This document shows, piece by piece, positions 26,171-32,000 of a DNA stretch of 32,000 nt. The DNA comes from Wallemia ichthyophaga EXF-994. Taxonomy: Eukaryota; Fungi; Basidiomycota. A program made the position numbers and the translations under genes. How positions within the stretch are numbered: position 1 is the stretch's first letter; each line of letters opens with the position of its first letter. The notes under the pieces were generated by a model. That model did not search any database. It saw only the letters and a program-made list of their open reading frames with translations, and was not told the DNA's origin. The DNA is taken from NCBI RefSeq assembly GCF_000400465.1, contig NW_008806294.1, positions 80,944 through 112,943 on the forward strand, written 5' to 3'.

Positions 26171-27022
26171 CTAACGATGCCTTCCCGCTCGCTGAATCAG
26201 CTGCTCCAATTGTCTTTGTCTTCTCTGTTTTCTCTGTCTCTTCCTCTCTCCCTTTTTGTCTACTGCCTGAGCACCCTTCTCAATTGGTGTTATACCCGGC
26301 TTCTCCGGGCTGCGCGCGTCCAATACCTCAATGCAACCGCGTGACGCAACAAACACAATCGTAGAGATGACAATCCAATTATTAATCAAATTATTAACTT
26401 TGGAGCTATCCCATATACTTCTATCTGTCATAAAGTAGCTGTATTTCACGGTGAAGGACGTAAAAGTGTGGAAAATTAAAGTCCCAAATGATGTCCCCAT
26501 AATTGTTAGCAAGACTAAACTGAAGGGGTTATTTTGCCCAAGTCATTATTCATTAGCGCTTTGTAAACAAACAGCTTTTCGGAGATAACGACAGCCAGGA
26601 AAAATGTTCCAGGAGTTATGCAGGGTGCTAAGTAGTCTTTCAGTGTATTGTACCACCTAAGATTTGGTACGGTGATATAGCTGTTAAAGCTCACGTCGAT
26701 TGGGGGAGTAGTGGGATTGATAGCACCAGAACGACGATAACATGTTCAAAACACTTGGCTTTTGGGTTCGATTGTTCAGCTCTAGCGGGTTTATTAGGTG
26801 GTGAAATCTGAATATATGAATTCCTAGGAAATATCCTTCCACCAAAATAAAATAATAGAAAAATCAAAGCTAGGCTCCATAAAACGACAATCAAAAGCAC
26901 AGGACTATCCTTATTAGTTAACATTGGGATTAATGATTTTAATCTTGTTACTGTTTCGACCACGAATATTGATAATTTCACTAATTTTCTAAAAGCAAAC
27001 CCCAAATCAAAAATCGCATCAT
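26171..27022 (-). CDS. Orphan multi-pass membrane protein, about 236 aa, 4 exons
   Basis: Introns 27000-26951, 26694-26657 and 26572-26520 (all GT-AG) join four exons totalling 711 nt in one frame. There are about four hydrophobic segments and a basic C-terminal tail. No family recognised. Confidence 0.55.
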
Positions 27023-27143
27023 TCTACACAAAACTGAAACCGTGTCCATGGTTTAAGTCAGGACTGCCGAGTTCGGGAACGCGGCTCGAGCGAGTGTCGA
27101 GTAAGAATAAAATTAACCGTAAGCGGTTCCTTTCGAAAGCATA

Positions 27144-27713
27144 ATGCACAAAGGTATTCCAGATGTTATGATACCTTTTCTGTCATGTGCTTTTGGGCTC
27201 GAACGGGGCACTAGCTAGCGGTGACAGGGTGTGCGAAGGTGGTTACAGTGTTTTTGCTTGTGTGCTGTGCGCTCTTTACGTAGCTTATTGTGGGGGTCGG
27301 TTGCGCTGGCTAAATGTGGAATATTCCAGATTAGCAGGCCAAATAGTCCTGCAGGTTGCTACACTCATCAAAAGCACTCTGCTGCTATCGGTTCAAGCTG
27401 TTTGTTACTCAGAGATTTTGTTGGCAATAGCCTTGTTCTTCCTGCGAAGGCCGAGTCCACCACGATGCTCACTGCGCTCAACAGATACCTTAACCATGTA
27501 GACCACTCTGTCCTCGATTGGTGGCTTTTATTTGACAGAACTCACTATGTCTAGAGGTATTCAAGCAAGAATGGGCTTTGCGAGGATAAGGAGGATGTCG
27601 TGATCAAATACCTTGACTGGTTTTCTCTTTGCCGGCTCAACGACGATCCCGCTGGTGTTGCTCCCTCAACGAAGTTTAATTCCAGCTATGTAATCTGCGC
27701 ATACACGCGCTAA
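27144..27713 (+). CDS. Possible small hypothetical protein; exon structure uncertain
   Basis: The frame of the 27231 track ORF resumes after TAG (27552) if 27498-27554 is a 57-nt intron, and then ends at TAA 27711-27713. The 5' end is unresolved. Confidence 0.25.
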
Positions 27714-28377
27714 TGATCCGACCACCTTAATTCCTGAGGATATTTAGTGTGCAGGGGAGCGATGGCGTTTGTGCTTTCGGATGCCCGGTCAGCGTGTGCA
27801 TTTGCTGGTGCTGCTGCGCAATGTATTATCTGACTCAACGCTATTCATCGCGCACTTGCAGGATAGAATATAATTACCGACGAGCTTCTGCGAATGTGAC
27901 GTTGCTGAGGGAGGGGCGCCATGACGCCATAATTGACGAAAGCAAATTTTCTCACCCACCGGCCTCGAACGCGTGGTCCCGCATACAGCGCTGCTCTCCA
28001 CTCTCTTTGTGGTGCAGCGGGAAGCGAGCCCGCGCGGAAACCGCTCTCGGACCCAAACAGCTCGACCGCAGGCGCGAACATCCGACCCCCACCCACGCAC
28101 TTCCCGATGCGCTGATGATGATGAGATATGATTTTGATGTTAAGACGATACGTGTTAATAACTGTGTCCATCAATGATTTTTAAAAAATGAGGATAAAGG
28201 GGGTGCTGAATTTACTGGAAGCGTTTCTTAATTAGCGTCGCAATTTTCAAATTGTTGGTGATTCTCAATTAAACTGAACCGCCGGACCCCGCTGCGCCAC
28301 CACGCACCTGCTTGTCAGAGCCACTCGCTTTAATTGCGGATTAATATATAGCCAAGCGTCCTGCTGAAGAGAGGCAG

Positions 28378-28903
28378 TGTAAACGTCTTGATTTTTGTGA
28401 GGTTAAAGTGCACACAAAGAGCAAGGCGCTGAGATTAATAAGAGAATAAGTCTAAATGTATAAGAGTCAAAAAGGAATCGTTCAAATAGTTTAGATTTGG
28501 GGTCTTTCCATTGTTCTTTATTCTCATTGTTCTCATAGCGACCATGATGTCATGTTACCTGTTCCTGCATCTTGCCCGCTGTATTACCTACGAAGGTAGG
28601 GGCACATCCTTATATGCCTACAAGGATGTGGTCCTCCCCGATCAGGTTGCACGGCGGGCGTGACGCAGGAACATGGAGGACAATGGGTTTTAGTGAGAAC
28701 AATGAGAATAAAGAACAATGAAGATTATGCATGATTATGCACGAGAACAATGAAGATAACGAAACAATGGAAATAAAACCTAGAATCTAAACTATTTAAA
28801 CAACTGCTTTTCTTTTGATATATCTCAGACTTAATTCTTTTATTAATCTCAGCGCCTTGCTCTTTGTGTGCAGTTTAAGCTTACAAAGATCAGAGCATGT
28901 ACA
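28378..28903. mobile_element. 526-bp foldback/MITE-like element that is one imperfect palindrome, with TGTA...TACA termini and a 6-bp flanking direct repeat
   Basis: The left arm 28378-28614 is the reverse complement of the right arm 28619-28903, around a TGCC loop. Perfect blocks of 33 bp (28409-28441 / 28840-28872) and 27 bp (28509-28535 / 28694-28720). AGGCAG flanks both ends. No ORF inside. Confidence 0.78.
28509..28770. repeat. Internal ACAATG/CATTGT repeats within the foldback element
   Basis: CATTGTTCT twice in the left arm (28509, 28525). ACAATG five times in the right arm (about 28680, 28699, 28715, 28747, 28764). Tandem GATTATGCA(T/C) at 28723-28742. Confidence 0.8.
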
Positions 28904-28904
28904 A

Positions 28905-28992
28905 GGCAGGATGGCCGAGTGGTCTAAGGCGCACGGTTAAGGCGACAGCATCCGTGTTCGAAAGAGCGAGGGTTCGAATCCCTCTCCTGTCA
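28905..28992 (+). tRNA. tRNA-Leu(AAG) with an 8-nt intron at the canonical 37/38 position
   Basis: Acceptor stem GGCAGGA/TCCTGTC plus discriminator A; D arm GCCGAGTGGTCTAAGGC; anticodon stem CACGG/CCGTG with AAG at 28939-28941; intron CGACAGCA 28943-28950; class II variable arm; T arm GAGGG-TTCGAAT-CCCTC. Confidence 0.95.
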
Positions 28993-28995
28993 AAC

Positions 28996-29000
28996 TTTTT
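28996..29000 (+). terminator. RNA polymerase III oligo-T terminator
   Basis: TTTTT begins 4 nt after the tRNA discriminator base. Confidence 0.8.
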
Positions 29001-29301
29001 GCCTGTAGTATCAGGCTAACCCTATTAGGCTTGGTCTCAGGTTGTCTAATGCATCGAGAATCAGTGTAGTTTTGACTGCTATATAGCAGCTTGAAAGGTC
29101 ATGTTATATAGCCCCTTGTAGCTCCAGTAATTCGATTATTGCATTCAAATTCCGTAACACATACTCAGCACACAACCACACCATCCCCGTATCACAAACG
29201 CGCTCACTTGACCAGTAATTATGCATAGAAGTACAAATGCGATATTAAATATTGTGTTCGAGTTCGCTGGACAGACCGCCAGCGTAAGACAGCACCCAAG
29301 C

Positions 29302-29768
29302 TTAGACGATTGGGAGAGGGGTACAACCTGAAGTGTCAGTTAGCAATGCAAGGTACCATAGTAATCGTATTTACGCACCCAAACCAATGAGGCCGTCTGA
29401 TTCCATGCCCTCGCAACAGACCGGGGTGTTCTTACACTCATCTAGCGCTTTGTCAGCAATGTTTAGGGTGCAACGAAAGAGTACAAACCTTGCAAAGCAA
29501 CTCCGATCAAGAGTGGGACCTGATCACATTGAACACCGACTTGGGACGCAATGTCGCCGGTGGAGATGAGGGAGTCATCCTTGCCGGTGCTGGTTTGAGC
29601 CTTTTTGTTCAAGTCACCTTGGAAGTGTAAGATGGTGTCATGCTACATATACCTATACTTACAGCATGAGACTTTGCCGGTGTTGCATGAGCCAGTCTCG
29701 CTCTTGTCTTCCCAGCCAGCAGAGGCAGCAGCGATAATACCAACAGTGAAGAGAGTTTGAGCGATCAT
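29302..29768 (-). CDS. Class I hydrophobin, 107 aa, 4 exons
   Basis: Missing from the ORF track. Spliced: MIAQTLFTVGIIAAASAGWEDKSETGSCNTGKVSCCDLNKKAQTSTGKDDSLISTGDIASQVGVQCDQVPLLIGVALQDECKNTPVCCEGMESDGLIGLGCTPLPIV. Signal peptide plus C-X6-CC-X29-C-X14-C-X5-CC-X12-C. Confidence 0.95.
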
Positions 29769-31610
29769 TGTGGAGAGATTGGAGATTTTGTTGTAGAAAA
29801 AGAGCAAGAGCACCTCAGCTATTTATGAAGCCAGCATGCCTACGCTAAAAGTCGCATCGAGGACTTGTGGTGAGTATAGCAAAGAGATTCGCATTCATTC
29901 GTCACTAGGCACGAGTATGTGATTATATATCAAACGCGGAAGAATAACTCAACACAGGCGGCATGACCTTAAGATTGCTTTTGTAAGCCATTAATAAATC
30001 TTGCCTCAACTTGATTGTCAAAGGCCTTCAACATTTCACATTTTCCAAGCTGAAACTTACAAGTGGAAACCAAGACACCATGAAGGCGGTGCAGCATGCG
30101 AAATGCAGCGCCCACACTAATACCGTACATATTTAAGTAAATGTGAAAGTGCTGCGAATGGCATGCAGCAATCCAAATTTCGCAAGTAACCTAGAGACGT
30201 TATGAGACCTCAAAACCACTCATCTTGCGACTCATATCTACATCAATGATATCCCGGGACAAATTAATGAGATGGCGGGGATAGTTTCAATTGTGTAAAT
30301 GTTTATATTGACGACCTTAATAAGACAAATCAATTGGACGACTTGAATCTCTCAGAGTTGTTTGAAACTTGGATCGAGCCCTGTACCAACAAAATCTACA
30401 ATCTAGCCATTTCACAGGCTCTCAAGCATTCTAAATCTATACAGATCTCCGCTGTCCCTGCAGTCCACCAGCGTTAGGCAGATCGTTGAGGTTACACTGA
30501 GAGCACTTGAAGGTTTGCAGACTCAACTATCATCGGTTTTGGTTGTTAACTCTGCTCAGCCAAGGAATGGCTTACAGGGAGGGTTTGTGAAAGGGATTGA
30601 TATACATATGCAATAAATTACTGAGGGATTGGATATTTTACGACAGTAGTTTTACTCGGCATATATGAAAAATAAAACTCAATCTGGGAATCTTTTGTGG
30701 GATTCTGGTGACGTGACGAAGAGTTCATGGGATGGCAAGGCACTTCATATGCTGACAATTTGTATAGTTTAGCAAAAATGGCGTTTAATTGCATCCTCAG
30801 CATTCTAGCTACATCTCCATCTCAACCATACGCTCAAAGTATACCTAGTTAGATTTTTCTACTACTGCCTGTCTCACCTCAATGGCTGTTTCACGAGTTT
30901 TGATGATCTCCAAATAAAAGGCTTTATCTGTAGCTCTGGCTGAAATTAATATGATTTTCCCAGATTTATATCGCTGACACACCGAATTGCGCCCTGCACG
31001 CTGTTCAGAAGCGGTGATCCGACATTGCTCTGAAGCATGTCATAGACGAGATGCTGTGGATTTAACTGAATTCAACAACAAAAGCAATATTCTCCCACTG
31101 ATAGCGATTACTAGCATCCCAAAATCTCAATTATTTACCCATCTAGACGCGTTTTACGTCTTCCGACGCTTAGAGTCTACAGAACTTCATATTAGCACCA
31201 GGGGAAAAGCAAGACCCCTTTTATTCGTTGCATACCCGGAGAAAAGTGCTTAAGTGCAGAAAAGTAGGCGTTAATCATACTCCGAAATCGGGGGTTTGGC
31301 TTCTGATAGTACATTTCGAAAAACCAAATAATGGGAATGGAGAACTAGATAGGTTTGCATTAGAACCTTCGGAAGTACGATAGTAATTCTAGTTACTCAT
31401 CTTGACATAGAGAGCTCATTGAACAGACGTACATAAAAGAAATCGACCATCCTAGCACAGTAGCTGTTTAGAAGACTAGAATCTTGTTGAACACTCATAA
31501 CAGCAAACCAATAACTCAAGAATTATGCATAGAGGTACAGATACGAGATGAGTTGGGTAGTGTTCTAGAGCTGGTCAAGTAGGATGCCAAATTAAGCAGT
31601 AAATCTCAGT

Positions 31611-32000
31611 TTAGACGATTGGGAGAGCGTCACAGCCTGTGCAAAAGGTGAGACAAGTAGATAGATATCAAACCCCAACTTACCAAGACCGATTGCAGAC
31701 TCGCTGTCGTAGTCCTCGCAACAGACTGGGGTGTTCTTGCACTCGTCTGTAGATCGTCAGCTTTAAGAAGGATATGAAACTTTTACGAACCCTCGATAGC
31801 AACTCCGATCAAGAGTGGGACTTGGTCACATTGTACACCGATTTGGGATGCAATGTCGCCGGTGGAGATGAGAGCATCGTTCTTTCCGGTGCTGGTTTGA
31901 GCCTTCTTGTTCAAATCGCCTTAGGAGTGTGAGATGATGTCAAGCTACACATCTCACATACTTACAGCATTGAATAGAACCAGTGTTGCAAGAGCCAGTC
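31611..32000 (-). CDS. Class I hydrophobin paralog, 5' end beyond the window
   Basis: Spliced: ...TGSCNTGSIQCCDLNKKAQTSTGKNDALISTGDIASQIGVQCDQVPLLIGVAIEDECKNTPVCCEDYDSESAIGLGCDALPIV*. Same 8-Cys spacing and same three intron positions as the 29302-29768 gene. Confidence 0.95.

Follow-up and report, generated by a model that had tools for sequence, protein, structure and literature searches.

A transposon-like 526-bp palindrome between 6-bp direct repeats at the 5′ edge of an intact tRNA-Leu(AAG) gene in Wallemia ichthyophaga

The analysis of a 32-kb stretch of the Wallemia ichthyophaga EXF-994 genome (the window, comprising 32,000 nt on scaffold KE007244.1) revealed a 526-bp imperfect palindrome that lies immediately upstream of a tRNA-Leu(AAG) gene and is bordered on both sides by the hexamer AGGCAG. 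We favor, with a probability of roughly 60%, the reading that this element is the old and fixed relic of a cut-and-paste DNA transposon, non-autonomous and of the foldback or miniature inverted-repeat transposable element (MITE) type, which inserted with a 6-bp target-site duplication. The signature of cut-and-paste transposition is seen in the sharp inverted termini, the exact 6-bp repeat at the edge of complementarity, the TG..CA ends, and the short, non-coding body with its subterminal repeats. Furthermore, the 17% divergence between the arms, a 52-nt indel, and the fixation of the element in all strains point to an insertion that is old and inactive.

Reading of the sequence, an inverted-repeat search, and an alignment of the two arms all identified positions 28378 to 28903 of the window as self-complementary from end to end. 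The termini are TGTA...TACA, with the left end reading TGTAAACG at 28378 and the right end reading CATGTACA at 28903. Since the repeat search placed the outermost inverted arms at exactly 28378–28447 and 28834–28903 (70 nt, 86% complementary), the boundaries of the element are fixed by complementarity and not by choice. A global alignment of the arms (237 versus 285 nt) yielded 187 matches and 39 mismatches, corresponding to 83% identity over the aligned bases, and a single block of 52 nt that is confined to the right arm and appears as a gap in the alignment. When folded as single-stranded DNA, the element reached −139.2 kcal/mol compared to −50.8 ± 4.8 kcal/mol for shuffled sequences (z = −18.5), a value equaled by 0 of 100 shuffles; the palindrome is therefore far outside chance. 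An earlier note on this DNA, made from the sequence alone, had described the same anatomy (526 bp, arms of 237 and 285 nt, a 4-nt loop, TGTA...TACA termini, AGGCAG on both sides, and no coding capacity), and every detail was confirmed by the sequence read, the repeat search, and the alignment. The element consists of the following parts, given in window coordinates with the supporting evidence in parentheses.

28378–28903, no strand assigned: imperfect palindrome, foldback/MITE-like element (inverted repeats, DNA fold, and 83% arm alignment; no Rfam family, long open reading frame, or protein match)
28378–28614, plus strand: left arm, 237 nt (arm alignment)
28509–28535, plus strand: left copy, CATTGTTCTTTATTCTCATTGTTCTCA, of a perfect 27-nt inverted repeat, with two GAACAATG motifs on the opposite strand (100% complementary)
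28615–28618, plus strand: central loop TGCC, 4 nt (fold and arm alignment)
28619–28903, plus strand: right arm, 285 nt (arm alignment)
28694–28720, plus strand: right copy of the perfect 27-nt inverted repeat (100% complementary)
Roughly 28721–28772, plus strand: about 52 extra nt of the right arm with further GAACAATG-type repeats (gap block in the alignment; short direct and tandem repeats)

The octamer GAACAATG occurs 5 times in the element (2 copies in the left arm and 3 in the right arm, within 28509–28532 and 28697–28752), compared to a single occurrence in the remaining 31.5 kb of the window. Clustered short subterminal repeats are common in MITEs, where they act as transposase-binding sites, and the GAACAATG cluster may simply represent such sites. 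The element is neither coding nor a known RNA. Its longest open frame in the window copy spans 58 codons, a 126-codon open frame in the copy of another strain (L007) had no relative among 5.8 billion proteins, and a permissive Rfam search of 28300–29050 returned the tRNA only and no family for the element. Two open reading frames (ORFs) of 78 and 142 aa that adjoin the element in the window yielded no record on look-up.

Exact copies of AGGCAG directly abut both termini of the element, at the points where complementarity stops. At boundaries that are fixed by an inverted repeat, the chance of such an exact 6/6 match is approximately 1 in 4096. Rfam places the start of the tRNA at 28905, so that the right copy corresponds to positions −1 to +5 of the tRNA, as had been proposed in the earlier note. 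The same holds for its statement that excision of the element together with one AGGCAG leaves a normal tRNA 5′ flank (...GAAGAG-AGGCAG-GATGG...). The features at this border and in the adjoining gene are listed below.

28372–28377, plus strand: left copy of the 6-bp direct repeat AGGCAG, a putative target-site duplication (sequence read; the junction of AGGCAG with TGTAAACG is also found in the strain assemblies L001, L007, L008, L009, and L016)
28904–28909, plus strand: right copy of AGGCAG, comprising tRNA position −1 and bases +1 to +5 (sequence read and Rfam tRNA)
28905–28992, plus strand: tRNA-Leu(AAG), class II (Rfam, 48.3 bits; gathering score 29)
28939–28941, plus strand: anticodon AAG (canonical 37/38 intron reading)
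28943–28950, plus strand: 8-nt tRNA intron (canonical 37/38 intron reading)
28996–29000, plus strand: T5 run, the expected RNA polymerase III (Pol III) terminator of the tRNA gene (read from the sequence; function predicted from the termination of Pol III at T runs)

This gene is the only tRNA found by Rfam in the whole 32-kb window. It has the long variable arm of a class II tRNA, and its sequence is identical in L007 and L016. While ARAGORN with default settings did not call the tRNA in the window, its intron mode proposed Ala(AGC) with an intron at a non-canonical position. We rejected this assignment in favor of Leu(AAG), because the tRNA has a class II shape, its intron can be read at the canonical 37/38 position, and ARAGORN itself called the orthologue in Wallemia hederae Leu(AAG). 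Annotation pipelines could mislabel the intron-containing tRNA at 28905–28992.

In order to follow the element across strains, 6 W. ichthyophaga assemblies were compared: the window, representing EXF-994, as well as L001, L007 (GCA_004918345.1), L008, L009 (a Logan contig), and L016 (GCA_004918305.1, a contig common to five samples). In the five further assemblies, the locus was reached via the neighboring Mediator-12 protein and a nearby ORF; the Mediator-12 reading frame of the window matches W. ichthyophaga proteins at 99%. One more contig, L011, is 100% identical to window 11213–32000, and another Wallemia contig, L012, is uninformative, as it stops before the tRNA locus. The element was found at the same junction in 6 of the 6 assemblies, and it is complete with both copies of AGGCAG in 3 of them, namely the window, L007, and L016, with a length of 527 bp in the latter two. 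L001 and L008 share the left junction, and their contigs end inside the right arm at GAGAACAATGA repeats (window 28745 and 28722), while the L009 contig ends 28 nt into the element (about window 28405). The strains diverge by approximately 1% over the surrounding 16–22 kb and to a similar extent inside the element, where 12 differences separate the window from L007, most of them located within the outermost 45 nt of either arm, while 3 separate L007 from L016. The element is fixed within the W. ichthyophaga lineage. The earlier note had suggested looking for an empty site in other strains and had named, as evidence against its proposal, a single copy that is present and syntenic in all strains and in related species. 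For the strains, this half of the expectation is what was observed, since the copy is present and syntenic in all 6 genomes and none of them is empty.

The ends of the incomplete contigs deserve separate mention. The break in L009 was considered as a repeat boundary (k = 31) that would indicate multiple copies, but this was rejected, since the sister Logan runs L014 and L015 break approximately 150 bp before the element, which points to low coverage. The contig breaks at the element are accounted for by its own internal repeats and by the low coverage of the Logan runs, and they provide no evidence of multiple copies. As an observation in its own right, contigs of three independent short-read assemblies (L001, L008, and L009) terminate inside the element, so that the assembly of short reads from W. 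ichthyophaga recurrently breaks at this palindrome.

The comparison of strains also revealed a difference in the center of the element.

28536–28693, no strand assigned: central 158-nt segment, inverted in EXF-994 relative to L001, L007, L008, and L016 (strain alignments)

The identity of window 28509–28720 to L007 and L008 is 100% and to L001 99.5%, but in the reverse orientation only; the centers of the window and of L007 are identical once flipped, and L016 is oriented as L007. A real inversion would mean that the two arms recombine. However, SOAPdenovo at K = 21 was used for the EXF-994 reference (PMC3849046), whereas the other strains are represented by IDBA-Hybrid assemblies with k up to 120, which were guided by the same EXF-994 reference. 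Because K = 21 is shorter than the perfect 27-nt repeat that flanks the segment, a mis-orientation of the center in the reference is at least as likely as a real flip, and the EXF-994 reference may be mis-oriented inside the palindrome. Similarly, positions 28404–28420 in the left arm of EXF-994 are the complement of the right arm (as part of a 33-nt perfect repeat), and a different sequence is found in L007 (18423–18440) and L016, which is consistent with a conversion of one arm by the other or, again, with an effect of the assembly.

The low K of the reference, together with a central orientation that differs from all other assemblies, could be taken to mean that the element is an artefact of short-read assembly. 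Against this stand the complete copies with both AGGCAG hexamers in the IDBA-Hybrid assemblies L007 and L016 and the same left junction in L001, L008, and L009. We regard the probability of an artefact as close to negligible; for the element as a whole it is excluded, because the assemblies of other strains carry the same element, and it would be confined at most to the orientation of the central 158 nt.

Alternatively, the palindrome could be kept for a function, whatever its origin, be it as a cluster of HMG-box-type sites (AACAATG), as a boundary or upstream promoter element of the tRNA gene, or as a hairpin-RNA locus. It is retained in all strains at a divergence of approximately 1%, equal to that of its surroundings, all of the region from −1 to −526 of a tRNA gene that is still conserved is made up by it, and its five GAACAATG motifs resemble the HMG-box/Sox-type core. 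Yet the differences between strains inside the element accumulate at a rate that is approximately neutral, and the 12 differences between the window and L007 cluster in the termini. The drift of the arms to 83% identity and their 52-nt indel speak against a hairpin under selection. In addition, there is neither an Rfam match nor a counterpart in W. hederae. A selected function has no positive support beyond retention, and we consider this explanation very unlikely.

In W. hederae (L002), the orthologous locus is syntenic, with Mediator-12, tRNA-Ala, tRNA-Leu, and hydrophobins in this order. The exons of the tRNA-Leu are 100% identical between W. ichthyophaga and W. hederae over 38 + 29 nt, with differences in the intron and the variable arm. 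No inverted repeat of at least 20 nt was found in the 1.5 kb around the W. hederae tRNA-Leu, and by the comparison of these two species, the palindrome is specific to the W. ichthyophaga lineage. The heptamer GAGCATG upstream of the W. hederae tRNA resembles the right end of the EXF-994 element, which we attribute to chance, as it is a 7-mer only and is not kept in L007 and L016 (AAGGCATG, AAGACATG).

According to the reading that we favor, a DDE transposase or integrase supplied in trans would have recognized the inverted termini TGTA...TACA and introduced cuts staggered by 6 bp at the 5′ edge of tRNA-Leu(AAG), in the sequence ...GAAGAG-AGGCAG-GATGG... Repair of the gaps would then have duplicated AGGCAG. 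Because the duplicated hexamer holds tRNA bases +1 to +5, its right-hand copy would have rebuilt the complete tRNA gene, which would thereby have stayed intact and conserved. The insertion would postdate the separation of the W. ichthyophaga and W. hederae lineages, having taken place in the former, where it is now fixed. Since then, the arms would have diverged by approximately 17%, with a gain or loss of 52 nt in one of them, and they may still exchange sequence. The integrase-like type of the enzyme is suggested by the TG..CA ends in combination with the 6-bp duplication. We infer the transposition itself, the type of the enzyme, and the age of the insertion, whereas the anatomy, the exact 6-bp repeat, the intactness of the tRNA, the presence in all examined strains, and the lack of the palindrome at the W. 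hederae orthologue were directly observed.

A local origin without transposition would instead involve a break or a stalled fork at the tRNA, followed by fold-back priming or template switching, with AGGCAG matching by chance or as microhomology. Indeed, tRNA genes are replication-fork barriers and fragile sites, the palindrome extends down to a 4-nt loop, as fold-back repair yields, the arms may exchange sequence (as seen in the inversion of the center and the homogenized patch), and no other copy is known. However, such an origin predicts inverted sequence beyond the arms or an arbitrary junction, not exact 6-bp direct repeats at the points where complementarity ends. The TG..CA ends and the clustering of short repeats near the termini likewise have a transposon-like character, and the sequence upstream of the orthologous tRNA in W. 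hederae bears no resemblance to either arm. Taking both sides into account, we consider a local origin unlikely.

Several properties of the element are shared with known transposon systems. Its size of 526 bp (below approximately 800 bp), lack of coding sequence, inverted termini, abutting direct repeats, subterminal repeats, and AT-rich body are those of a MITE, and a target-site duplication abutting the termini was found in the window, L007, and L016. On the other hand, neither an insertion polymorphism nor an empty site was seen in the six W. ichthyophaga assemblies, and MITE families are defined by many copies, whereas this element is known from one. With foldback elements it shares an inverted repeat that spans its whole length, but its duplication of 6 bp differs from the classic ones of 7 bp (Galileo, P superfamily) and 9 bp (Drosophila FB). 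The integration sites of Ty3 are Pol III start sites a short distance upstream of tRNAs, with a 5-bp duplication that does not overlap the mature 5′ end. Like Ty3 and Ginger elements, the element has TG..CA (TGT..ACA) ends and a duplication within the integrase-type range of 4–6 bp; in contrast to a solo long terminal repeat (LTR) of Ty3, it is palindromic without LTR structure, its duplication measures 6 bp, and its junction at −1/+5 overlaps the mature 5′ end. Polintons possess terminal inverted repeats of hundreds of bp, a retroviral-type integrase, and 5′-AG...CT-3′ termini. The element ends in TG..CA rather than AG...CT and has no Polinton genes nearby, but it has long terminal inverted repeats and the 6-bp duplication that is described for Polintons (PMC10045372). 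A Polinton/Maverick deletion derivative consisting of approximately the two repeats would likewise be a palindrome.

Duplications of 6 bp have also been reported for hAT6 (PMC12730594), and LTR integrases generate duplications of 3–6 bp with TG..CA ends (PMC10045372, PMC12730594), while Ginger1 and Ginger2 differ from the element by their 4–5-bp duplications (PMC10045372). IS3EU/GingerRoot elements, which are found in fungi including Basidiomycota, have 6-bp duplications and terminal inverted repeats (>30 bp in fungal rust families), both of which are present here. The termini of complete IS3EU families are TA..TA (in rusts TAYGG..CCRTA), and those of GingerRoot are occasionally TG..CA (PMC10045372, PMC12730594), so that the TGTA..TACA termini match the minority TG..CA form only. 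Furthermore, no association with tRNAs is reported in these two publications, as opposed to the position of the element described here. Since IS3EU/GingerRoot, Polinton, and LTR integrases share parts of the signature (PMC10045372, PMC12730594), the claim of the earlier note that this combination fits no known family was too strong. Another part of its interpretation, namely that an insertion of transposon type duplicated 6 bp and left the tRNA intact, agrees with the anatomy of the element and with the lack of a palindrome in W. hederae. The element is a further member of a known element type and not a new class, and it is best filed as an orphan foldback MITE that was probably mobilized by an integrase-like DDE enzyme.

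To our knowledge, no DNA-transposon superfamily other than Dada has been described that is directed at tRNA and snRNA genes. Dada elements are associated with tRNA (including tRNA-Leu), U1, and U6 genes, their duplications of 6–7 bp are part of the RNA gene, and their published junctions read AGGAAC, AGGCTG, and AAGGAAG (PMC3706591). The duplication at −1 to +5 of the tRNA is reminiscent of this, but the gene is unsplit here, whereas Dada elements, with sizes of 4.7–11 kb, insert in the gene body and split it (PMC3706591). They lack terminal inverted repeats, as the earlier note correctly stated, and instead have subterminal ones of 7–9 bp that mimic the target (PMC3706591). A membership in Dada was therefore rejected: the element forms an inverted repeat over its entire length, its terminus is TGTAAACG and not AGG..., and the tRNA gene is whole.

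As suggested in the earlier note, the position at the tRNA could nevertheless reflect a multi-copy, undescribed DNA-transposon family with a transposase aimed at −1/+5 of tRNA genes and a duplication that regenerates the gene, i.e., a safe-harbor strategy. With 9.6 Mb, the W. ichthyophaga genome is among the most compact and repeat-poor fungal genomes, and compact genomes favor such strategies. In support of such a family, the insertion lies exactly at the mature 5′ end, and its duplication overlaps the first five tRNA bases. Integrase-type enzymes that are tethered to Pol III genes are known from Ty3, several short-read contigs end inside the element, as they would at repeats, and Dada targets tRNA genes with 6–7-bp duplications (PMC3706591). 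However, this explanation builds on one copy, and the contig breaks are explained by the internal GAGAACAATGA repeats in L001 and L008 and by low coverage, with the break in L009 not being diagnostic. Moreover, the copy is fixed in all strains without insertion polymorphism, the arms are 17% diverged with no sign of recent activity, and only 1.67% of the W. ichthyophaga genome consists of repeats (PMC3849046). Such a family thus appears improbable. It is more doubtful still that the element is a surviving non-autonomous member of an undescribed Wallemiomycetes integrase-like lineage, the enzyme of which would have been directed to the first tRNA bases, with the duplication rebuilding the 5′ end; in that case, the long hairpin may also recombine arm-to-arm, leading to a flip-flop of its center.

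The reading as an old foldback/MITE-type relic, too, has to be weighed against several points. A single copy is known, and BLAST revealed no other in the 32-kb window or in approximately 36 kb of additional Wallemia sequence. Searches of metagenome, prokaryote, and viral collections gave only chance matches of 20–27 nt: a 20-mer of the conserved arm hit 4 loci in metagenome contigs, all of them chance matches of 21–27 nt, and a 21-mer had 0 matches in prokaryotic and viral contigs. No transposase or autonomous relative is linked to the element. Among the 6 W. ichthyophaga assemblies there is neither an empty site nor an insertion polymorphism, and the upstream flank of W. hederae aligns nowhere with W. 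ichthyophaga, so that the ancestral empty state is deduced rather than seen. With arms that are only 83% identical, the element is either old or was never a clean transposon, and the 6-bp match, improbable as it is (approximately 1/4096), represents a single event. As to the location at the edge of the tRNA, it may be due to targeting, or simply to the fact that an insertion that did no harm could persist in this very compact genome.

Some further observations concern the neighborhood of the element. Between Mediator-12 and tRNA-Leu, W. hederae encodes a 316-aa protein and a tRNA-Ala(AGC) (L002 14925–16415). W. ichthyophaga instead harbors approximately 2 kb (window 26365–28371) that lack detectable homology, annotated genes, and Pfam matches, a gene-free stretch that is unusually long for so compact a genome. 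Nine open frames of this species-specific upstream region (26174–28180) had no Pfam match, and no larger transposon remnant was seen there. Downstream, the direct repeats at 29299–29650 and 31608–31952 were considered as LTRs and rejected, as the gene tables identify them as tandem hydrophobin paralogues. These paralogues are encoded on the minus strand at 29299–29770 and 31608–32000 and are 80–91% identical, and a third, inverted copy lies beyond the window (L011 21308–21760). Finally, the NCBI gene models of L001, L007, L008, and L016 fuse neighboring genes, including UBX with Mediator-12 (1884/1900 aa), ERO1 with PWWP and NAP (about 1300 aa), and Mgm101 with a nucleoporin (about 1565 aa).

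Taken together, the element would provide an example of how, in a compact, repeat-poor fungal genome, a target-site duplication can keep an insertion on the very border of a gene from doing harm. Should the element belong to an undescribed lineage of the kind outlined above, that lineage would be the DNA-transposon equivalent of Ty3 or Dada, with a target gene that remains functional. The discovery of further copies at the 5′ ends of other tRNA genes would make it the first known case of a DNA transposon that targets tRNA genes and leaves them undisrupted, and such targeting, if true, would matter for safe-harbor integration tools as well as for the persistence of mobile elements in streamlined genomes.

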